A stretch of DNA of 64,000 nucleotides, taken from positions 230,035 to 294,034 of IMG/VR virus record IMGVR_UViG_3300044568_003163; one strand, written 5' to 3'. Under the pieces are notes generated by a model. That model worked only from the letters and a program-made list of their open reading frames with translations, was not told where the DNA came from and did no database searches. The position numbers and the translations under genes were made by a program. How positions within the stretch are numbered: the stretch's first letter is position 1; each line of letters starts with the position of its first letter. Positions 33,093-61,991 of this stretch are shown here, piece after piece.

Positions 33093-34286
33093 CTAGAATA
33101 ATCCACCAATCGTATATGCTAATGAAGGATGCAAAGGAGGCAATCCAGCAGGAACAATGATTCGATTAAGAGGATCTAGAATAGTTTTTTGGAATTGATG
33201 TTCGAGGTCCATCTTAGGTGCAAATTCAATAGGATAATTTCCAGAAGTATAGGCAAATACATCGCAGAATTGATCTGATGAATGATACCATTTTACTTTG
33301 TCACCAGCTTGTATTAGTTGATATTTACCTTTTAATTTAGCATCCTGATTAAGCAAATAGTTATGATAACCGCCTGCTCTGACGTGAATTGGACAACCTG
33401 ATTTCATTTCAAAGGACGTTTGGTCGTTGATAATGAATTTATTGTAATCAGAGATTCCTCGAGACATTGATATTTTTTCAATGTTTGAAAGTTTAAACTC
33501 TTTCTTAATTTCTTTGATAATTTTTACTAATTCAGCATTATCTTTTGGTGTGATTTTTTTCTTTGTGAAAATAAATCTTACGGCATCGGTGAGTTTTTGT
33601 CTACAAAATACCGGAGTTGATGATTGAATAATCTCTAGACCAGTAGTTTTCACATAGGATAGATTATCATAATCTTTACCATCTTTCCAGATGATGTTTT
33701 GGATGTATTTCTTTTTAGCAACCCATATTGCATTTTCTGCAATTGTTTCTAGTTCGAAATCTAAGTAATTTTCAGTATTACGTTGTTTTGCATAATCGTC
33801 TAATACCTTTTTGATATATGCAGCAAGTCGATTTGCGTTAATATTTAATACGAAATCCTTAACTGTACCTTGCCAATCGACGGAATCCATAACTTCTTCG
33901 AAAATAAGATAACCGGAATCGGTATCGGTGTATTTCCATACCTGACCTTTGATTGGTTTTACTTGAACGCCTTCGGGAACACCTAACTTTTCTAATAAAG
34001 CTCGGTCTTTATGAAAGAATTCTTTAAAGTACTTGTCAACCATTACTTCAGTAAAACGAATAGCATCTTGTCCTTGTAATGTTACAGTTTCAGCAATTGC
34101 AATATTATAGAAATGAAAGTACTCGTTAGCGAATGCACCATAAATTGAATTAATGATTAGCTTTATTGCCTGTTCAGAAGATGCACATCGTAAGGATTCA
34201 TTTTTAAATTCATTTAGTTCTTCAGGACTTAAAGTCGAGAAATCTAAATTTTGTATATCTTCTAAGGTAAGTTTTTCTATATTCAT
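33093..34286 (-). CDS. gp43: Family B DNA polymerase, C-terminal subunit (gp43B-like)
   Basis: Motif B KLIINSIYG, motif C YTDTDS and KKKY; lacks exonuclease and motif A. Confidence 0.93.
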   Translation of the reverse strand: MNIEKLTLEDIQNLDFSTLSPEELNEFKNESLRCASSEQAIKLIINSIYGAFANEYFHFYNIAIAETVTLQGQDAIRFTEVMVDKYFKEFFHKDRALLEKLGVPEGVQVKPIKGQVWKYTDTDSGYLIFEEVMDSVDWQGTVKDFVLNINANRLAAYIKKVLDDYAKQRNTENYLDFELETIAENAIWVAKKKYIQNIIWKDGKDYDNLSYVKTTGLEIIQSSTPVFCRQKLTDAVRFIFTKKKITPKDNAELVKIIKEIKKEFKLSNIEKISMSRGISDYNKFIINDQTSFEMKSGCPIHVRAGGYHNYLLNQDAKLKGKYQLIQAGDKVKWYHSSDQFCDVFAYTSGNYPIEFAPKMDLEHQFQKTILDPLNRIIVPAGLPPLHPSLAYTIGGLF

Positions 34287-39134: not shown

Positions 39135-40520
39135 TTAATTTTTTAATTTTGACATTTTTCTTTCAATCTCTAAATGTATGTTCTTTTTTCTCTTTCTCTC
39201 TGAATATAACGTAGTAAGAATTTCCTTAAGTACGGAAACTTCTTGATTGTCATATATTGCGCCTGTAGTAGAAACTATAAAGTTCGGATCTGCTTTATGT
39301 TTTTCTAGTTTGTCTGTATCTTGGGTTTTTGTTATAAATGATTCCGGAGAAACATTAAATTGTCTCATAATTGAAGGGTATAGGGAAGCGTAATCAAAAC
39401 ATGTTACAGCTCTAAACATACCTGCTTCAGGTTCTTTAACATAAGCACCTTCATACGAACCTTTTGGTGTATCTACTTTCTTATCGGCAATTACCATGTT
39501 TCTTTTAAAATAACCTTTCCATAAAAGAGCTTCAGTTAAATTTACTGCAGAAGAAGCTTTATAAATAGACAAATCACATAAACAAGAGACAGACAATACT
39601 GAGTTAAGTGTCTTTAATTTTTTGTGAATTAAGCACACTAACGCAGCATCTATGGCATTGTAGAGAATATATTTATCATAATCGTTTTCATACAGCTCTT
39701 GTAAAGTTCCACTATAATGTAATTTAGTTACACCTAATACCGAATTAGCAACCCAATCAAGTTTATTGCTTTCTTTGATCGCTACGGTTCTATCCCATCT
39801 ACGATATACGTCTAGATAATCAATAATTCCGATGTGTAATGGTATTAGATCGTTTCCTTGTAGTTTTCCAGAGGGTGAAGCCTTGGATACGTCGATGTTT
39901 AATCTTTTGCATCGATTAGAAATATATTTCCAGTCAAATCCCATAAAGTTCCAACCGATAGCTAATGAGAAATTAGGTAAAAATTTGTTGATGAAAGTAT
40001 ACATCATATTGTACTCATCTTCAAAGTACATATATTTAAAATTCCAATCGCCGAATTCTTTAAGATATTCTCGATGCTTGTCGAAGATTTCTTTCTCTTG
40101 TTCTTTTGATATTTTTTTCCAACCTAGAACTAATGTGGAATTTGCTTCTGTTGCAATCGCAATAGTAGTTATTCTTTCTCTAGCTATTTCTGGTTTAGGG
40201 AATCCATCAATAACCTCGGTTTCGATATCTATTGATTGTACTTTAGGAAAGTTTAATGCGGAAAGTTCTTCTCTTTCATCTGGTGGTAGAGTATTAATGA
40301 ACTCGTAAACCGACCATTTATTAAGTCTTTTTTCGGCAATCTTTTTAACGGGTTTGCCATCCCAATTCTGAAAATCTGGATTTCTTCGAGGATCTGTTAT
40401 TGAACAAACAGTCCAATTCAATATATGAGGAATTTCGAATTTTTTAATTTTAACTCGACCTTCTTTGTCATAGTAGGAGATGACTAATTCGCTTTCGTTA
40501 TTTTCTACGTCTAATATCAT
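39135..40520 (-). CDS. gp43: Family B DNA polymerase, N-terminal subunit (3'-5' exonuclease plus motif A; gp43A-like)
   Basis: Exo I SIDIET, Exo II GWNFMGFD, Exo III YNAID and motif A FDYASLYPSI; ends in the first fingers helix. Confidence 0.93.
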   Translation of the reverse strand: MILDVENNESELVISYYDKEGRVKIKKFEIPHILNWTVCSITDPRRNPDFQNWDGKPVKKIAEKRLNKWSVYEFINTLPPDEREELSALNFPKVQSIDIETEVIDGFPKPEIARERITTIAIATEANSTLVLGWKKISKEQEKEIFDKHREYLKEFGDWNFKYMYFEDEYNMMYTFINKFLPNFSLAIGWNFMGFDWKYISNRCKRLNIDVSKASPSGKLQGNDLIPLHIGIIDYLDVYRRWDRTVAIKESNKLDWVANSVLGVTKLHYSGTLQELYENDYDKYILYNAIDAALVCLIHKKLKTLNSVLSVSCLCDLSIYKASSAVNLTEALLWKGYFKRNMVIADKKVDTPKGSYEGAYVKEPEAGMFRAVTCFDYASLYPSIMRQFNVSPESFITKTQDTDKLEKHKADPNFIVSTTGAIYDNQEVSVLKEILTTLYSERKRKKNIHLEIERKMSKLKN

Positions 40521-53460: not shown

Positions 53461-54027
53461 TTATTGTAATTGGAAGTCTATTCTCATATCGTTGAAAGCA
53501 AACGTAGCTTCAAAAGTTCTAAATTCTGGAGTTACTTCAGAATACGACATTGTAAATTCGTTCAATCCGGTAAATAAACAATCCGTAAATATTGAAGAGT
53601 ACATTGCATTACCTTCCGCATCAAATATTCTAATAGGAACATCAACAGTATATGGTTTTGAAGTAGAGAACGAATAGTAATAAAAGAAAGTTTCTAACAT
53701 AATCCAATAATTGACATTTCCGTCAAATAATTGAAAAGTGATGGTAAAATTACGATCGATTAAAGTCTCTTGTGATAATGCCTGTCTAAATTTACGAGTA
53801 GTACCTTTTGCTGCATCTTGATATCCGGGTTTAACTTGCTCGATAGGAGAATAATTAAAATTAGGTATCGTAATTGATTGTATCGAGTAATTTACTAAGT
53901 CGGAAACATTCCTAACCGGAGTTGGCATTCGATGTATATATGGCAAATACCTTTGCTTAATTTCTTCCGGTATAAAAGTCTTTGGTAGTTCGACTTTAAA
54001 TAAGTCGTTTCTATTTTGTAAAATCAT
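53461..54027 (-). CDS. Tail tube-fold protein (gp3 tail-tube terminator-like)
   Basis: YSIQSITIP, ITFQL..NYWIM and FTDC...L..F...Y...F.ATF pattern of the gp3/gp19 fold. Confidence 0.55.
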   Translation of the reverse strand: MILQNRNDLFKVELPKTFIPEEIKQRYLPYIHRMPTPVRNVSDLVNYSIQSITIPNFNYSPIEQVKPGYQDAAKGTTRKFRQALSQETLIDRNFTITFQLFDGNVNYWIMLETFFYYYSFSTSKPYTVDVPIRIFDAEGNAMYSSIFTDCLFTGLNEFTMSYSEVTPEFRTFEATFAFNDMRIDFQLQ

Positions 54028-54033
54028 ATGTTA

Positions 54034-57000
54034 TTAAAATCTATCGTTATTATCATCTCCGAGTAAATCTCCAGGTACATCATCGAAATTTAGTGATAGA
54101 GCTACTTTGTTGTGTACTAAAATACCATTTGCATAGTATGTGTGATTGTCTTCTATTTCTAAGTTGTATACTTTAGTAGGTTTCTTAGAGACTATTTCCG
54201 TAATTCCTTCAATTGTTATATGTTCATCGAATTCATTTAACGCGATATCGCCTTCGATTAATTGAGCCACTTCTAAATCATGTAATTCCATAGATGAAGT
54301 AGGGTCGAATGAACACCAACCTTTATCAATAATCCAGAATGGATGCTCAGGTGTACATTGTATTGAAGTTCCATCAGCAAAATCTAATAAGATAAATTTA
54401 GAAGCAGATGGTTGTATAAGAGATTTTACAATTCCTATTTCAGTTTCTTCGTAATCTTCGTTATATGTTAAAATTTCCATTCCAACTTTAACTTCTTCGA
54501 TTAACATTTTAATTCCATCCGGTAAAGTAATGTAAGTTCCTTCAACGAAACATCCACCTCCACCTCCACCTGAACCACTAGCCTGTCCAGTATTTTGCAC
54601 TGGAGCGGTAGGAATTGGAGCTGGATTAATTGGCGCTGGTTGAGGATTAACTACTGGTCTAACTGGCGGAGCCGTTACGTTAGGTGCATTTTGAGAGACA
54701 CCACCTCCACCACCTTGTTGTGTATATGTTGTTGCCGGAGTAACATTTATATTAGCAAGATTTGCATTTAATTCTAATTCAACAAAAGAAGGAGTTGGTA
54801 CAGGAGTAGGAGCTTGTACTACTACCGGTTCACTACTAACAGGAGCAACATAAGTAGTAGCTGCTTGACTAGTAACCGGAGTTGGTAATGGAGCTGGTGC
54901 TGATATCGTTATTTGTTGAGTGTTAATTATTTGACTTTGTGTTGCTAATTGACTTTGTAATGTAGATAATAAACCTTGTTCCATTAACATTTTAGATTGA
55001 CATAAAGATAAAGCTGCATTCAATTCCTTTACTTGATTGTTTAAAGACGATATCGTTGATTGAGATGAATCTAATTGTTGGTTTAAATTTGATATTTGTT
55101 GATTTAAAATCGATATGGTTGCTAATTCTGCTGCATTAGTTGATGTTAATTTAGTTATTTGAGCTGCATCTGATGCATCATTAGCCGAAAGCTGAGCATT
55201 AAGCTTTGAATAATCATTTATTTGCTGAGTTAATAGTTGATTTTGTTCTAATGATTTAGTTAAATTATCTGCTTGAATTTTTATTTGATTGTTCAAACTA
55301 GTATTTTGCGAAACGAATAGATTGATAGATGATTCTAACGAAGCAATTTTATTAGCTTCATTCATATTCAACCACTCATCATTATTATAGAATCTACCGT
55401 TATATAAAAAGGTCTTATCTCCTTTGATATTCAATAAGAATATTCTAAATTGACGATTAGAAAATCCAAGTATAGTATTTGCTTGTGTTTCTGTTAATCT
55501 AAATACAATTTCACCTTTACTTTTCGAAGTAAACGTGCTAGGATATTCTTTTATTTCGACATTCTCACCGGTATTAGACGTAAAAGTAAGTATCAATTCA
55601 CCTATACCGGATAGATTAAGAGCCGTATTTTGTCCTTTTCGTGAGTCTTTTTGAAATATTACAAACTTTAAGAAAGTTACTGAATTTGTAATTAAAATTC
55701 TAGCTAATCCATTACTATAAATAGTAGAATTGTTATTACTAACTAATGCTTGTCGAGAAACCTTAATTAAATTACTTCTTTCTGAGAGTGTATCAACATC
55801 CGGATTTATTGAACTATAAGATACAGAAATTTGAGTATTATCTAAAAACGATGTGATGTACTTAAAGTTATCTAAAACTGGCTCAACAATTCTATTAAGT
55901 TGAATGTCTTTAATAACGTTCTTATTGTAAATTACAGATTGAATTGGATTTTCTCCTAGATTAAGTTGTAGTAATTTTCTGCCGTACTTAGCAACTGAAT
56001 ATGATGTTAACGAAGAAGCTTTCCATACTTGAGAATTATCGTTACGGTTATACATACGAACTACGTAATCAATTTTAAAGGCTATTGCCGATGAATTCTT
56101 AATTATCGGTCTAAAAGTATTAACTAAATCATAATTAGTTGTCTGTGACATTTGGATATCATCGGTTTTAACCCAATAATACGATTGACTAGATGAATCA
56201 TATATGTATTCAGATATTACTAAATCATGAAGTAGCATATAATTATATCCATTAGAATTTAAGTCATTAATGAATTGCTCGATAATAGCTCCATTGTATG
56301 TACCATAAAACTCGATATAATCTCCGTTACTTGATTCCTGAATAGTAGCTGCAACCGTACTAAATTGGTCTTGTGTTGCTAAATCAAATTGAGTAGTTTC
56401 TTGTAGATAAATGTAATCTTGTCCGTCAATTTCTCTTCGTTCATTAATCCAAGCAAAAGTTGCTTGAATAGTTTGGTCACGCTTTATTCCTATGATAGTT
56501 CCATTATTAGGCTCTTGAGTAATTCTCTCTACCACAGTGTCGCCGGTTAGATTGCCTATCCAGTAATCAATAATAAGGTTATGTAATGAAAGTACTCTAA
56601 ATTCTAAATAAGAATCATAAATACGTCCTCCGAAAAAGAATGAATTTGGATTTAATGTTTCGTATGTATCGTTTCGATTAAATACGAAATTTGCAAGATT
56701 AAAAAGTTTTCCGTTTTTCTTTGCAGCTTTAAGATTAAATATAAGTCCTTGATATTGCTCATAATTAAATCCTTGAACTAAGTGAAGTCTAACTGTATCA
56801 TATACAGGAGCTTGTGGTGTAGTAAATACAATAGGTAAATTCGCAGTAGATGTTAAATTATCATCGTAGTCGTTGTAAAAAATAGCTTTATCAATATCTA
56901 ATAAAGCTGATCTGTACGGATCAACATACGCATAAGATCGGTTTCTGACGTTACCAGTACCTAAAGGCAATCCGAGCTGTATTAATTCATTTGCGTCTGA

Positions 57001-57171
57001 ATTAAGTATTATATCTTGTCCATCATGAGCATTTCTCATCTTCCAAATAGGATTGGTAGTTGTGCTTAGACGATAAGGATTTCCTAACGTGTTAATTTCT
57101 GATTGGTCAGCATAAATGTACTCTAAAAGGACAGATGATGATATACCGATAAATTTTGAAGATGTTGCCAT
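54034..57171 (-). CDS. Large putative structural protein with coiled coil, P/T/Q linker and C-terminal Hint domain
   Basis: 1045 aa; GGGGGG-CFVEGT...TPEHPF...VYNLEI...ILVHN-K. Confidence 0.8.
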   Translation of the reverse strand: MATSSKFIGISSSVLLEYIYADQSEINTLGNPYRLSTTTNPIWKMRNAHDGQDIILNSDANELIQLGLPLGTGNVRNRSYAYVDPYRSALLDIDKAIFYNDYDDNLTSTANLPIVFTTPQAPVYDTVRLHLVQGFNYEQYQGLIFNLKAAKKNGKLFNLANFVFNRNDTYETLNPNSFFFGGRIYDSYLEFRVLSLHNLIIDYWIGNLTGDTVVERITQEPNNGTIIGIKRDQTIQATFAWINERREIDGQDYIYLQETTQFDLATQDQFSTVAATIQESSNGDYIEFYGTYNGAIIEQFINDLNSNGYNYMLLHDLVISEYIYDSSSQSYYWVKTDDIQMSQTTNYDLVNTFRPIIKNSSAIAFKIDYVVRMYNRNDNSQVWKASSLTSYSVAKYGRKLLQLNLGENPIQSVIYNKNVIKDIQLNRIVEPVLDNFKYITSFLDNTQISVSYSSINPDVDTLSERSNLIKVSRQALVSNNNSTIYSNGLARILITNSVTFLKFVIFQKDSRKGQNTALNLSGIGELILTFTSNTGENVEIKEYPSTFTSKSKGEIVFRLTETQANTILGFSNRQFRIFLLNIKGDKTFLYNGRFYNNDEWLNMNEANKIASLESSINLFVSQNTSLNNQIKIQADNLTKSLEQNQLLTQQINDYSKLNAQLSANDASDAAQITKLTSTNAAELATISILNQQISNLNQQLDSSQSTISSLNNQVKELNAALSLCQSKMLMEQGLLSTLQSQLATQSQIINTQQITISAPAPLPTPVTSQAATTYVAPVSSEPVVVQAPTPVPTPSFVELELNANLANINVTPATTYTQQGGGGGVSQNAPNVTAPPVRPVVNPQPAPINPAPIPTAPVQNTGQASGSGGGGGGCFVEGTYITLPDGIKMLIEEVKVGMEILTYNEDYEETEIGIVKSLIQPSASKFILLDFADGTSIQCTPEHPFWIIDKGWCSFDPTSSMELHDLEVAQLIEGDIALNEFDEHITIEGITEIVSKKPTKVYNLEIEDNHTYYANGILVHNKVALSLNFDDVPGDLLGDDNNDRF
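54109..54552 (-). other. Hint (intein/Hedgehog-like) autoprocessing domain, 148 aa
   Basis: Block A Cys1, block B TxxH, block F VYNL and terminal His-Asn; +1 residue is Lys; no endonuclease insert. Confidence 0.9.
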
Positions 57172-57957
57172 TTAAAATATTTTGAATATGCTCTTTATGA
57201 TTTTACTAACGTTGAGGGTAGCTCCAACGCCAATAGTTATTTGAGGTCCTTGTGTTTGATTGATTGGATTAATACCCCAACCAGCATTGATGGTAGGACC
57301 CCATATGATTGTAGGTTCTGACTTTTTAAGGAATCGATCTTTGTCTAAGATAGCTCCATCTATTTTATCAAATTTTACTCCAGGATAATCAGTAGTTACG
57401 TATATTTGATATGATTTATCTAACTCAGTTAATCCAGTAGTTAGTTTAATTTTCATTTCATCTTTAGTTATCGTAGTTCCTTTATCGTTGATTGTAAATG
57501 TATTATTTATAGTATCTATCGTGAACTTGGAATTACCTTCTAAAGTTTTTGAATTATCTTTGTCAAAATCTTTATGATATGCCCAATTTAGTTCTTTAGT
57601 TCCGTCAGGATATTCTTTAATTGTATTGCTTACAACTATAGGCTCTTGACTTTTTATCGATGCAACAGTAGAAGCAATATAAAGTACATTGCCTTCTAAT
57701 TTTTTTAGGTCTTTCGCTAATCCGGCATTGAGGTCTTTTAGATTACGTCGATCGGCGATAAGTACATTTTTTAAACTTACTTCATTGCCATATTTAGTTT
57801 TAATCGTTCTTACTGAATCGGTTAAAGCTAATTGGTTTTGACGATCTACTATTGCTTGCTGTTTTAGATTTGCATTATCAGAACATTGCTTAGCCATAAG
57901 CAATGCAAAAATAATTAATGCTCCTATTAAAATTTGATTTAAGCTAGGTAATTTCAT
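57172..57957 (-). CDS. Membrane-anchored coiled-coil protein (possible spanin-like lysis accessory)
   Basis: N-terminal TM helix ending KQC, coiled coil, beta-rich C-terminus. Confidence 0.45.
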   Translation of the reverse strand: MKLPSLNQILIGALIIFALLMAKQCSDNANLKQQAIVDRQNQLALTDSVRTIKTKYGNEVSLKNVLIADRRNLKDLNAGLAKDLKKLEGNVLYIASTVASIKSQEPIVVSNTIKEYPDGTKELNWAYHKDFDKDNSKTLEGNSKFTIDTINNTFTINDKGTTITKDEMKIKLTTGLTELDKSYQIYVTTDYPGVKFDKIDGAILDKDRFLKKSEPTIIWGPTINAGWGINPINQTQGPQITIGVGATLNVSKIIKSIFKIF

Positions 57958-60900
57958 TATATTGAATTTCTTTTTATTATCGCTGAACCTTCGATCGAAT
58001 ACGTTAATTTATTTGCGTAAAGGACGCCAGGAGTAGTAGATAAGCTTATTGCAGTTCCACCAGTAGTTATTACTACATCTTTTAATATAGTAGAAGTATT
58101 TGCAGTCATAACATCGGTAGATATAACTTTACATCTAGCTTCTAAAGAATTATCAGTTCCACCAACTGCGTTCATAGTTATAGTAACCACAAAATTATTT
58201 GCATATGATATAAATCCACTTTCAGTTTGGGTGATTGTTTTTACTAGAGAACCTGCAGAAAGTATTTGCATTGTTCCTTCTCCAGTAGGATTGTAAAATG
58301 AATATGCGATTCTTTGACTAGAATTTTCTAAGTTAGTACCCATAGTGAAATCTGGAGTTAAATTCTGACCGTCATTATCATCGCTATATATATCTCCTAA
58401 TTCGCCAGAACCTGAATATGCTCTAAGTTTTCGAGAAACTAAATTTTCTCTAGCAATTTCGTACCAACAACCTCTACCGTAATCGTTTGCTCCAGAACCG
58501 TCATCTCCGTGCCATTGGAGGGTTATTGACCTCCAAGGAGTAATTTTAAATGCACCAATTCCTTGCATATCACCAGCTTCAGCTTGACTATTTTGTACGA
58601 AACTACTAGCTATAACTCCATGTGCACCATTACTATTAGTAATATCCGGATCATAGCCTCCATATGAAATAGAAGTCCACGATTGGTTTTGTATAATATT
58701 GTATTGATTGATTGCATTATTTATTGCCGCATCTATTGCGGGAGTTGTCGTTGACAATGTTGCTGGAGTGATTCCGAGAGGTGCTTGTTTAGCATTACCT
58801 GGCATAGGCCAAGGTCTTTGGTTTGTGAATCCATTTTCTGTTCCATTTACTCCAGCTCCTGGTAAAGGCCATGATACACCACCGCCAGCTGCTAATCCAT
58901 TAAATTTCTCGGCAGCCATAGCAATATTATCTTTACTAATTATACTACTTTGAACTTGTGGTGACGGTGTTGTATTATATGCAGTATATCTTTTAATAGC
59001 GTTAGGTACTAAAACTGAATAATTTCTAGGATCTACGTCAAGAATCATAATTCTAAGTATTTGGCCTTCGTAATATCCATCTTCGATCGTAAATTGTTGA
59101 GAATTCGTAAGTGGATTTATTGGTACAGATCCACCAGGAACTTGTCCACTTAAAAAAGTAGGAGTCGAAGATAATTGTAGACCGGTAATGAAACTAGATG
59201 AGAATATTGGGCAATTAGTTTTAGGCTTCGTTAAGTCTAAAAATACAGTAGAACTTGTAGCAGGTATTTCGTGATATACTATTCGATGATAAGCATTAGC
59301 AACATTGGTAGATTGACCATTATAAGTTGCGATGATATTTACTGCATACCAAGGAAGTGTATTAATATCATAATATTTTGGTAATAAGGCAAAAGTATTA
59401 TTAATAGTAAATCCTCCTACATTAGATCTACCTCCTGGTAAATTTTTACTAGGACCATCTCCCATAGAACTCCATTTAGCAACAACTATAGGGCTTACAG
59501 TATTACTTATAGTAGTTGCACCAATAGGAACGGATCTATCTGCAAATAATGCACCTACTGAGGTTTCTCCAGGCATTCTACCCATACCAGTCTTGGCATC
59601 TGGTAATGCAAAATCCGGATACATTGAACTTGCCATTCCTTTAGCTAAAAATTGTTTAGCCATTATAGTTTTTTCTGTAACAAATCCTATTTGCAATCTA
59701 TAACTATAATCATCTGGGGTGTACGAAAAATTCCTAAAAGTAGAGTTAATTGATGGTCCATCCCAACGAATTGTATCTAAACCTTGAGTTTTGGTTTCGC
59801 CTTGAACGATAAGTCCACCAATTAACATTCCATTAATTGGAACGTTATTAAAAAATTTATGATATCCGGAATTAGTAGATCCTATAGTAATCGATCCATT
59901 AATTGCAAGTTTAGATTTAGCATACGAAATTTGATTTATATTGATCGATCCTAATACATTATAAGCGGTTGAACCTGGAACAAATCCAATACCAACATTA
60001 CCGGTCGTATCTTCTTTTCCTGGCTGAATGTATATATGAGGATTTTCATATCCTTGAACTTGAGCATACGATAGCGTTATATTAAAATCCGGTAATGCTT
60101 TCCCACCACCATCATCTAACCCTCCACTCACTGATCCGTAGAAAGAAGTAGTAGCCGAAGAATCTCTTCTAACGTAAGTTTTTAATACTGGATTAGTTAA
60201 TGAAATAGGTGCAGGATTATATACTGGAATCTGGATTCCTCCTTTCCCACCACCAGGCGTAGTATAAGTTGTAAATTGTTGATCGTCTTTCCATGTAGTA
60301 TTACCAAATGCAATACCTCCATTACGTGAAGATGCAGTTTCTCGAGAATCAAAACCGGCATACCAATTAGTAATATAATCACCTGGTTTAGCAGAATCTC
60401 CGTCCCACATAAATTTTCGAGTAGCAACATCAGGAATCGCTGATATATGTATAGGAAATTGAGGTTTATTTATTGTACGAGTATTATTAGATAGACCTAA
60501 TCTACCACCATTATATGCAGTAACTCCAGTAGTAGAAACAGTTGAGTTATTAATATCGTAGCTACCAGCATTAATCATTAATGAATCTAGCACTACTCCA
60601 ACATTTCCACTAACATTAACTGAGTTTTCTGTAGTTCTAACCGGAGTAATAGATCCAGCTAAAGTAAGAAACTTAGCATTTTTTAAATTTTGATTACCTA
60701 TTTGTACAGAATCTTGAAAGAATTTAATAGCTGAATCAACTGTATTAAATCTTGTTATTTTTCTAACAATACCTAAACCTTGAAAATTATTTGTTGCTAT
60801 AGGTATTCCTTGAGAAGCGTTATAAGTAGGTCCTATAATAACTGAACCTGAACGATGTTCTGGATATCCATCAGTATAACTAGTTCCTGCTCCTTGTTGA

Positions 60901-61991
60901 TTTTGTAATGCTATATATCCATATGTATTAGCAGCTCCAGAGCTACCTGGTAATGTTTCTATCGATGGAATAGAATTTATTATAATTTCTTTTAAATTAT
61001 CAGACGAGCCTTCAGTTCCGTTATTAAAGGAAAAATCTCTTTCAATATTAACAAATTTCGTTCTATCATAATTACTAATCTTAACGTCAGCTGCCATAAT
61101 TTCAATCGTAGCAGGTTTAACTATATAAGGAGCAGTTCCAGATGTAGCACCACCAGCTTGAATTTTTATATTTGATTGATACGAATGAACTTTCCATTTA
61201 GTTGTAAAAGTTCCACCTGACTGATCCTGTTCAGTAGCAAACGCTGCATGAACAAAATTATACGCACTATTTGTTCCTCCAGCCGAAGTACTCCCAGAAT
61301 TACCGTAAATATCAGAAGAAGTTCCGCCTTCAGGTAAAGGTCCACCAAAAGAAACCCCGTTTTGACCGTTTGGATTAACATTATTTTGAATTATTGTAAA
61401 TTTCGGTACACTTGCAGTATCTCGTGTACCAGAAATATTAGTACCAAAATTCTTAAGATTAAAATAAGCCCAATTAGCATCTCCTAAGAAAATCGAATTT
61501 TTGAAGGTTTCGTTAGGAATTAAGAAATCTATTTCATTATTTGTAAAACCTACATTAGGAGTAGGTGAATATCCTTGACCATCTATTGGATTACCACCAG
61601 TAGCTGGTAAATAATATTTCCATTCGAGTGAACCACCAGCAGTTCCTGGTATACCTTGAGGACCTGTAAGATTTATACCTGAAGCAGTCCATCCAGTTGC
61701 TCCTCCTATGTTATAAAACTCATATACATTACCGCTACTATCAAGAAAATGGTCTTGTATTCTTAACGAAGTGCCATCATGGTCAGCAGTTTGGCCGAAT
61801 GCGGAAGGACCAACAAACCAATGGTCTCCTCTAAATCCTTGAGGACCTACTGGTCCAATTTCACCTTGAATTCCTTGAATTCCAGGAGGTCCACCACCAG
61901 CTAATATTAGCTGATCGAAGTTAAAATTTACTTTTTCTATTACACCAGACATTGAGTCTGATGATATAATTTCTTTAATTGTAATTGGCAT
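57957..61991 (-). CDS. Tail fibre / baseplate-associated protein
   Basis: 1344 aa; N-terminal DSMSGVIEKVNFNFDQL fibre-type anchor, collagen-like GIQGIQGEIGPVGPQG run, G/T/N-rich body. Confidence 0.7.
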   Translation of the reverse strand: MPITIKEIISSDSMSGVIEKVNFNFDQLILAGGGPPGIQGIQGEIGPVGPQGFRGDHWFVGPSAFGQTADHDGTSLRIQDHFLDSSGNVYEFYNIGGATGWTASGINLTGPQGIPGTAGGSLEWKYYLPATGGNPIDGQGYSPTPNVGFTNNEIDFLIPNETFKNSIFLGDANWAYFNLKNFGTNISGTRDTASVPKFTIIQNNVNPNGQNGVSFGGPLPEGGTSSDIYGNSGSTSAGGTNSAYNFVHAAFATEQDQSGGTFTTKWKVHSYQSNIKIQAGGATSGTAPYIVKPATIEIMAADVKISNYDRTKFVNIERDFSFNNGTEGSSDNLKEIIINSIPSIETLPGSSGAANTYGYIALQNQQGAGTSYTDGYPEHRSGSVIIGPTYNASQGIPIATNNFQGLGIVRKITRFNTVDSAIKFFQDSVQIGNQNLKNAKFLTLAGSITPVRTTENSVNVSGNVGVVLDSLMINAGSYDINNSTVSTTGVTAYNGGRLGLSNNTRTINKPQFPIHISAIPDVATRKFMWDGDSAKPGDYITNWYAGFDSRETASSRNGGIAFGNTTWKDDQQFTTYTTPGGGKGGIQIPVYNPAPISLTNPVLKTYVRRDSSATTSFYGSVSGGLDDGGGKALPDFNITLSYAQVQGYENPHIYIQPGKEDTTGNVGIGFVPGSTAYNVLGSININQISYAKSKLAINGSITIGSTNSGYHKFFNNVPINGMLIGGLIVQGETKTQGLDTIRWDGPSINSTFRNFSYTPDDYSYRLQIGFVTEKTIMAKQFLAKGMASSMYPDFALPDAKTGMGRMPGETSVGALFADRSVPIGATTISNTVSPIVVAKWSSMGDGPSKNLPGGRSNVGGFTINNTFALLPKYYDINTLPWYAVNIIATYNGQSTNVANAYHRIVYHEIPATSSTVFLDLTKPKTNCPIFSSSFITGLQLSSTPTFLSGQVPGGSVPINPLTNSQQFTIEDGYYEGQILRIMILDVDPRNYSVLVPNAIKRYTAYNTTPSPQVQSSIISKDNIAMAAEKFNGLAAGGGVSWPLPGAGVNGTENGFTNQRPWPMPGNAKQAPLGITPATLSTTTPAIDAAINNAINQYNIIQNQSWTSISYGGYDPDITNSNGAHGVIASSFVQNSQAEAGDMQGIGAFKITPWRSITLQWHGDDGSGANDYGRGCWYEIARENLVSRKLRAYSGSGELGDIYSDDNDGQNLTPDFTMGTNLENSSQRIAYSFYNPTGEGTMQILSAGSLVKTITQTESGFISYANNFVVTITMNAVGGTDNSLEARCKVISTDVMTANTSTILKDVVITTGGTAISLSTTPGVLYANKLTYSIEGSAIIKRNSI

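Follow-up and report, generated by a model that had tools for sequence, protein, structure and literature searches.

An apparently mobile Hint cassette at the C-terminal ends of phage virion genes, with probable self-cleavage of a predicted tail fibre

The subject of this report is a single open reading frame (ORF) of 1045 residues within the window, a stretch of DNA that forms the final 64 kb of the 294,034-bp IMG/VR phage record IMGVR_UViG_3300044568_003163, which comes from a freshwater phage of 32% G+C with T4-like replication genes. The encoded protein (hereafter the carrier) is a predicted fibre with a Hint domain at its C-terminal end, and the comparisons set out below indicate that this Hint is a small, sharply bounded mobile cassette that has entered the C-terminal ends of different phage virion genes several times, in each case after Gly residues near the C-terminus. 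Such a mobile Hint most economically cuts itself off in order to be tolerated, which would probably leave an 873-residue predicted fibre ending in oligoglycine. To our knowledge, phage inteins and their kin are known almost only within replication and packaging enzymes. What is new is that a cassette of the bacterial intein-like (BIL) type occurs on virion genes of phages and that its mobile unit, Gly-Gly/Hint/Lys, is defined; a literature search, in which the primary BIL work was known through reviews, returned no description of a Hint or BIL domain in a structural protein of a phage.

The domain carries blocks A, B, F and G without a homing-endonuclease insert. It opens with Cys874-Phe, has TPEH (residues 940-943) as block B and closes with a block F/G region (residues 1001-1021) that ends in His1020-Asn1021. 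The +1 residue is not Cys, Ser or Thr, the domain sits in a hypervariable C-terminal tail past a conserved motif, and it lies nearer to BILs than to inteins or Hog domains. Judged by each of these sequence features, it is a type A BIL Hint. A profile made from 11 phage copies finds, among PDB sequences, BIL2 of the Tetrahymena BUBL1 locus at 1e-21 and a Clostridium thermocellum BIL (2LWY) at 5.7e-19, with inteins at 1e-9 or weaker, and a fold search with the modelled Hint returns BIL2 at a template-modelling (TM) score of 0.87-0.90 and a root-mean-square deviation of 1.7 Å, Hedgehog being far weaker (1at0, 8e-7). In the Pfam scan, both Intein_splicing (PF14890, 6.9e-10, 39.4 bits) and PT-HINT (PF07591, 32.5 bits) exceed their cut-offs over residues 881-1021. 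Down to 43-50% identity, the 11 Hints invariably keep Gly at -1, Cys1, Phe2, the Thr and His of block B, Asn-His-Thr-Tyr through His-Asn, and the +1 Lys. The original prediction, made from the DNA letters, had described a hexa-Gly run before Cys1, TPEH, His-Asn, a +1 Lys and a 24-residue acidic tail, and residues 868-1045 are just as described; counted from Lys1022, the C-terminal piece has 24 residues with 6 Asp/Glu against 2 Lys/Arg.

The type A BILs (Amitai et al. 2003; Dassa et al. 2004; 2LWY) share with the window Hint the endonuclease-free mini-Hint form, Cys1, Thr-x-x-His, His-Asn, a +1 position without Cys, Ser or Thr and a place in the variable region of a non-conserved protein, and 2LWY matches its fold with a TM score of 0.88. 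Whilst those BILs belong to bacterial secreted and surface proteins, the hosts here are phage virion genes, and the window Hint differs further in its place at the very end of the protein, where only a tiny and dispensable C-flank follows, in its invariant +1 Lys and Gly-Gly at -2/-1, and in being a discrete transferred unit. Canonical class 1 mini-inteins (DnaB, gp41-1, RecA) have in common with it the fold, blocks A/B/F/G, sharp in-frame insertion, a patchy distribution, horizontal transfer and selection to remain active. The window Hint, however, is without a +1 nucleophile, since this residue is Lys rather than Cys, Ser or Thr in every phage copy, and it occupies a variable tail rather than a conserved active site. 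Inteins of terminase, helicase and ligase-like genes in IMG/VR end in His-Asn-Cys, unlike the His-Asn-Lys of the window.

Pretoxin HINT domains (PF07591) and Hedgehog Hog domains also free their attached part by Hint autoproteolysis, and the Gly/Cys-Phe junction is as in Hedgehog. Despite the PF07591 match, no toxin or other domain follows the window Hint, and the downstream gene is of the tail-tube family. Nor does it resemble Hog, as His-Asn is present and only 24 disordered residues, with no sterol-recognition region, come after it, so that attachment of a sterol, or of a lipid as entertained in the original prediction, finds no support. The protein is not of the BUBL type either: the Pfam scan gives no ubiquitin family, the N-flank is a disordered Pro-rich tether, and the two have only the Gly-Gly/Cys junction in common.

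Pfam additionally places an AXH domain (the Ataxin-1/HBP1 module, PF08517) over residues 875-978 (window 54166-54549) at 45 bits and 1.4e-11, over the cut-off, and in reverse the Hint profile finds the AXH structures of Ataxin-1 and HBP1 at about 1e-9. An Ataxin-type domain was rejected and the match read as a cross-hit of a related half-fold; it suggests either that AXH and the N-terminal half of Hint are homologous or that the Pfam AXH model overlaps Hint sequences.

The boundaries of the cassette emerge from comparison with the phage contig L002, a distant relative. Its orthologue of the carrier (774 residues, 26% identical) is without the Hint, and its fibre-like gene two genes upstream, in the position held in the window by a 1344-residue gene, ends in a Hint 83% identical to that of the window. 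DNA identity between the two is 81% from GGT GGA TGT (Gly-Gly-Cys1) to CAC AAC AAA (His-Asn-Lys), the two edges of the cassette, and falls to 31% and 23% in the sequences on either side; Lys1022 belongs to the transferred unit. The phylogeny of the Hints does not follow that of the host genes, for the Hints of fibre genes nest in the window's clade (support 99), that of homologue P0010 joins Hints of unrelated phage ORFs (support 94) and another fibre-type Hint lies elsewhere. Moreover, related His-Asn-Lys Hints terminate several unrelated, unannotated IMG/VR ORFs.

Amongst 118 listed homologues of the carrier, taken from metagenomic phage contigs, the Hint is present in 17 and absent from 101. 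A tree of the N-terminal 600 residues of 114 full-length homologues puts all 14 Hint-bearing proteins into one 29-member clade together with 15 Hint-less ones, and requires at least three gains or losses of the Hint, two of which are forced by well-supported branches. The site of the Hint lies in the variable tail, and for the tail of the window's clade the Hint-less relatives offer nothing comparable. The Hint of P0013-16 and P0108, by contrast, falls exactly at a GGGG/tail junction that Hint-less relatives also possess, and the tails after the Hint keep the Ser-Gly-Phe-Ser-Gly (SGFSG) motif of those relatives, an arrangement such as insertion at an already present site would produce. Oligoglycine close to the C-terminus recurs among the Hint-less homologues: 26 of the 101 contain a run of at least four Gly inside the last 70 residues, and in 21 of these 26, from several subclades (P0029-P0111), the run lies 3-4 residues from the C-terminus. 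This conserved near-terminal oligoglycine may serve in processing or docking, or may just be what the cassette targets. The residues that follow the terminal run in these proteins include x-Gln-Ser and Arg-Pro-Ser.

Selection on the cassette can be estimated from the same material. Between the window and L002 cassettes dN/dS (the ratio of nonsynonymous to synonymous substitution rates) is 0.085, with dS about 1.1, and amongst natural variants of the phage all seven single-nucleotide polymorphisms (SNPs) seen within the Hint in DNA runs are synonymous, those of the linker being mostly nonsynonymous. The Hint is hence under strong purifying selection, sporadic and mobile but not decaying. A sporadic, decaying insertion had been named at the outset as an outcome of a homologue survey that would count against the original prediction; the insertion does prove sporadic and horizontally moving, so that a chemistry devoted to assembly becomes less plausible, but the dN/dS ratio and the synonymous SNPs speak against decay. 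As a sharply bounded unit that moves between virion fibre genes without an endonuclease, the cassette offers a tractable case for how endonuclease-free Hint elements spread and persist.

The mechanism proposed here is inferred from the established chemistry of the family, the conserved residues and the dN/dS ratio. Type A BILs, according to reviews, combine an N-terminal thioester with C-terminal Asn cyclisation, ligation being possible by attack of the freed alpha-amine on the thioester, and BILs are said there to give mainly cleaved products. In the carrier, Cys874 would attack the carbonyl of Gly873 in an N-S acyl shift to form a thioester, cyclisation of Asn1021 would cut the chain ahead of Lys1022, and the thioester would be resolved chiefly through hydrolysis. 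The mature product would be the 873-residue fibre with its oligoglycine end, and the Hint and short tail would be discarded; partial re-ligation of the Lys-tail piece via the freed alpha-amine would be possible but not required. The last 172 residues would in this way constitute a self-contained autoprocessing cassette (Gly-Gly, the 148-residue Hint and Lys) in a variable C-terminal tail, and it may persist as mini-inteins do, having to keep excising so that an essential virion protein stays unspoiled.

Self-cutting is taken as the most economical reading because the tails are short, disordered, hypervariable or absent and most homologues are without the Hint; since this holds for 101 of 118, the chemistry is not evidently needed by the fibre. 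In the homologues, the tails after Lys range from 7 to 57 residues and are dissimilar past the first six or so. Cleavage had been expected over canonical splicing in the original prediction as well, in agreement with the type A BIL character of sequence and fold and with the predominance of cleavage products stated in reviews, and release of an N-terminal part, given there as roughly 870 residues and here as roughly 873, is likewise the outcome that best fits the analysis.

Several findings weigh against this reading. Plain hydrolysis leaves the strict retention of His-Asn-Lys/Arg unaccounted for, and the persistence of His-Asn followed by Lys or Arg, also in proteins that stop at the Lys, points to a role for the C-terminal reaction or for the side chain at +1. 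None of the eight members of the subclade to which the window protein belongs lacks the Hint, which also fits a benefit to the host. Because dS is about 1.1, the transfer between the window and L002 lineages is shown to be old, and no homing endonuclease lies beside or within the cassette, the small neighbouring ORFs matching no Pfam family.

The invariance of His-Asn could instead reflect selection for true splicing, a mechanism already proposed for type A BILs. The freed alpha-amine of Lys1022 would then attack the thioester so that the fibre ends in oligo-Gly-Lys-tail; a continuous C-terminus like that of Hint-less relatives would be restored and the element would functionally be an intein. 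The extein continuity of P0013-16 and P0108, with their GGGG/tail junction and retained SGFSG, accords with this. We nevertheless regard splicing as distinctly unlikely, given that cleavage products prevail among the BILs studied, that the tails are hypervariable, reduced to as few as 7 residues after Lys or absent, and that the tail of the window's clade is without counterpart in Hint-less relatives.

It is also conceivable that the Hint is not processed at all and stays as a globular distal binding or structural domain, or helps the C-terminus to fold and is then lost, as S74 domains do. The fibre, a predicted trimeric coiled coil, does have the Hint at its C-terminal end, and a review places self-cleaving S74 chaperone domains at that position on other jumbo-phage fibres. 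The likeness to S74 intramolecular chaperones is one of function only, that of a self-removing C-terminal module of a trimeric phage fibre; fold and chemistry are unrelated (a Ser-Lys dyad in S74, a Cys thioester and Asn cyclisation in Hint), and the Pfam scan of the window protein gave no S74 match. All autoprocessing residues, moreover, are invariant under strong purifying selection, close relatives fold without the Hint, and some 120 disordered residues separate the Hint from the coiled coil, a poor geometry for nucleating trimerisation. Altogether this makes an unprocessed Hint very improbable.

The wider family places the +1 Lys in context. At E <= 1e-3 the Hint profile finds 37,541 cluster representatives; the 404 at E <= 1e-30, many of them tandem arrays, define a large, unnamed His-Asn-Lys subfamily. 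Residues were counted in the best 149 matches, which provided 311 domain ends, and in 144 proteins for C-termini. The +1 residue is Lys at 214 of the 311 ends (69%) and Arg at 26 (8%), and the -1 residue is Gly in 95 cases and Ser in 65. Exactly at His-Asn-Lys stop 24 of the 144 proteins, with tails of 2-50 residues in 37 more. The +1 Lys singled out in the original prediction is, by these counts, ordinary for the subfamily. Most of the best 149 proteins contain 2-7 Hints in tandem, often with only Lys-Gly-Gly between them, and BUBL-type proteins, with Arg-Gly-Gly/Cys junctions and ubiquitin-like flanks, fall in the same set. The subfamily entries are named only 'hypothetical protein' and come from metagenomes, one Nanoarchaeota metagenome-assembled genome (MAG) and one foraminifer.

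Arrays of 2-7 His-Asn-Lys Hints with Lys-Gly-Gly or Lys-Gly spacers were observed, for instance, in metagenomic P0121, P0123 (the Nanoarchaeota MAG), P0131 and P0165. They have no real exteins between units, and the spacing is that of the Gly-Gly/Hint/Lys unit shown above to move, so that the arrays have the look of this unit repeated in tandem.

The relationship to BIL2 raises a further alternative, in which the thioester at Gly873 is resolved by the epsilon-amine of a Lys. In cis the +1 residue, Lys1022, would accept the acyl group, and upon cyclisation of Asn1021 the product would be a branched 'isopeptide splice'; in trans the acceptor would be a Lys on a different protein, of the virion or of the host surface, to which the distal end of the fibre would become covalently linked. 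BIL2 (PDB 6Y75, 6TMM; Tetrahymena thermophila BUBL1 polyubiquitin-like locus) is the nearest solved homologue by both sequence and fold, with 28-29% identity and Gly-Gly directly before Cys1-Phe, and its authors report that a K(epsilon-NH2)-C-terminus isopeptide bond is formed and that the N-extein, ending in Gly-Gly, is conjugated to other proteins without ATP. The N-extein of the window protein likewise ends in Gly-Gly, and the +1 Lys is invariant in the phage copies, prevails in the subfamily (69%), moves with the cassette and is retained within His-Asn-Lys even as the final residue. The covalent cross-linking foreseen by the original prediction thus gains by analogy from its nearest solved relative.

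The parallel is nonetheless a loose one. The +1 residue of BUBL is Ala, Ser or Met, the BUBL authors locating the nucleophilic Lys within the next ubiquitin-like domain, and the window Hint is followed by no second domain able to accept the acyl group; its N-extein is a disordered fibre tether, that of BIL2 a ubiquitin-like domain. Arg, a poor nucleophile, takes the +1 position at 8% of subfamily ends, so that positive charge fits better than a nucleophilic role. Furthermore, 101 of 118 homologues function without the Hint. A BIL2-like isopeptide transfer is hence possible but unlikely, and it is somewhat less likely again that the Gly-Gly/Hint/Lys unit is a protein-ligating device, passing an oligoglycine thioester to its own +1 Lys or to a Lys amine of the virion or host surface. 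If true, phages would be able to cross-link the distal end of a tail fibre through isopeptide bonds without ATP, much as BIL2 does, and Lys would be the +1 nucleophile of the whole widespread His-Asn-Lys Hint class, tandem arrays included. What is at stake is a new +1-Lys ligation chemistry as against plain self-cleavage, the closest characterised relative being isopeptide-forming; for protein engineering, small Hints that cleave themselves or ligate at a Gly-Gly junction are useful parts.

The layout of the 1045-residue protein, on which the predicted self-cleavage would act, is summarised in Table 1 along with the neighbouring genes.

Table 1. Parts of the Hint-bearing protein and its gene neighbourhood, in window coordinates
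Feature	Position	Strand	Assignment or basis
Whole ORF, 1045 residues	54034..57171	-	Predicted conserved jumbo-phage tail/baseplate-associated fibre protein with C-terminal Hint cassette
Residues 1-596, conserved all-beta N-terminal region, chain of beta-sandwiches	55384..57171	-	AlphaFold2 (AF2) model, predicted local distance difference test (pLDDT) 76
Residues 597-751, L/S/N/Q-rich coiled coil, predicted parallel homo-oligomer	54919..55383	-	AF2, three-copy fold, composition
Residues 752-873, disordered Pro/Ala/Val/Thr-rich tether	54553..54918	-	AF2 pLDDT ~30
Residues 806-824, conserved C-terminal motif of the family and first Gly5 run	54700-54756	-	Within tether
Residues 868-873, Gly6 run, immediately N-terminal of Cys1	54553-54570	-	Within tether
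Residues 874-1021, 148-residue type A BIL-like Hint	54109..54552	-	Pfam, profile, fold match
Lys1022, +1 residue, part of transferred cassette	54106..54108	-	Invariant in all phage copies examined
Residues 1023-1045, acidic disordered hypervariable tail	54037..54105	-	Homologue comparison and AF2
Downstream gene, 188 residues, tail-tube-family protein	53461..54027	-	phrog_45 tail tube, 1.4e-6
Upstream context, 261-residue protein with hydrophobic N-terminus and 1344-residue fibre-like protein	57172..61991	-	ORFs, relatives

In the AF2 model of residues 584-1045, a single long helix (597-751) is followed by a disordered stretch (749-871, 18% Pro), a confidently modelled Hint (873-1022, pLDDT 82-91) and a disordered tail, which bears out the coiled coil and P/T/Q linker noticed originally. 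Folded in three copies, residues 584-770 form a parallel coiled coil with a score of 0.67 against 0.01 for the best control, the mark for this score having been calibrated on two copies rather than three (21 of 30 true pairs and 0 of 23 single chains passing); the contacts, between residues 598 and 757, follow a 3-4 heptad spacing. The conserved motif and oligo-Gly run of the tether are also present in Hint-less homologues.

The genomic context suggests that the carrier is a trimeric fibre or connector of the tail or baseplate. Homologues occur in uncultured phages of 460-735 kb and in Flavobacterium phage MaF61, where they adjoin baseplate genes. The structural relatives of the N-terminal region in BFVD are uncharacterised phage proteins, including those of Tenacibaculum phages PTm1 and pT24. 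This region has no match in Pfam, in PHROGs or in a profile search of PDB sequences, and Foldseek returns only generic macroglobulin/FN3 arrays at a TM score below 0.2. At about residues 445-600 there is a weak likeness to the N-domain of the baseplate protein BppU, given by two marginal leads: a VIA fold match to 3uh8, the N-domain of TP901-1 ORF48 (Z 8.5), and a weak BppU_N lead from Atlas.

Gene order is conserved in relatives as fibre-like gene, small protein, carrier and tube-like gene, and the pairing of the last two is syntenic in related phages. The 188-residue downstream protein falls into Atlas clusters named tail tube (PF23849/PF06841, score 0.98). As the carrier gene is directly upstream of a tube-family gene, identity as a tail sheath was considered and rejected: neither Foldseek nor VIA gives a sheath fold and PF04984 finds nothing. 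The sheath C-terminal domain of the genome (PF17482, 33.5 bits) is instead encoded at G000:C1:219167-219460 within an unusually long 1115-residue ORF, which precedes the first base of the window by about 10.6 kb and is some 65 kb from the carrier. With the sheath so far away, the tube-family gene at 53461-54027 may be a tube paralogue, for example a baseplate tube initiator.

The 1344-residue upstream protein (window 57957-61991, minus strand) matches no Pfam or PHROG family. It consists of a conserved head of about 30 residues followed by collagen-like Gly-X-Y repeats, and has only its N-terminus in common with the Hint-bearing P0120 of contig L002 (40% over 55 residues).

The carrier ORF is not an assembly artefact, as a second, independent IMG/VR contig (L004) carries a letter-identical copy of the ORF and the region is unbroken in contigs of several lake-water and freshwater metagenomes (2016, 2023, 2024). 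A Hint-less allele of this phage was not found in public runs, in which contigs mask rare variants, making the result uninformative either way. A search of the phage genome for a further Hint or intein found none.

Contigs covering part of the Hint and tail (window 54051-54320), one with Ala969Asp, occur in a lake-water metatranscriptome run, in which carry-over of DNA is possible. Elsewhere in the window, the family B DNA polymerase seems to be split into two minus-strand ORFs, 39135-40520 and 33093-34286, which match positions 113-494 and 495-838 of the phrog_262 profile, respectively; the genes in the approximately 4.8 kb between them include that of the ribonucleotide reductase large subunit.

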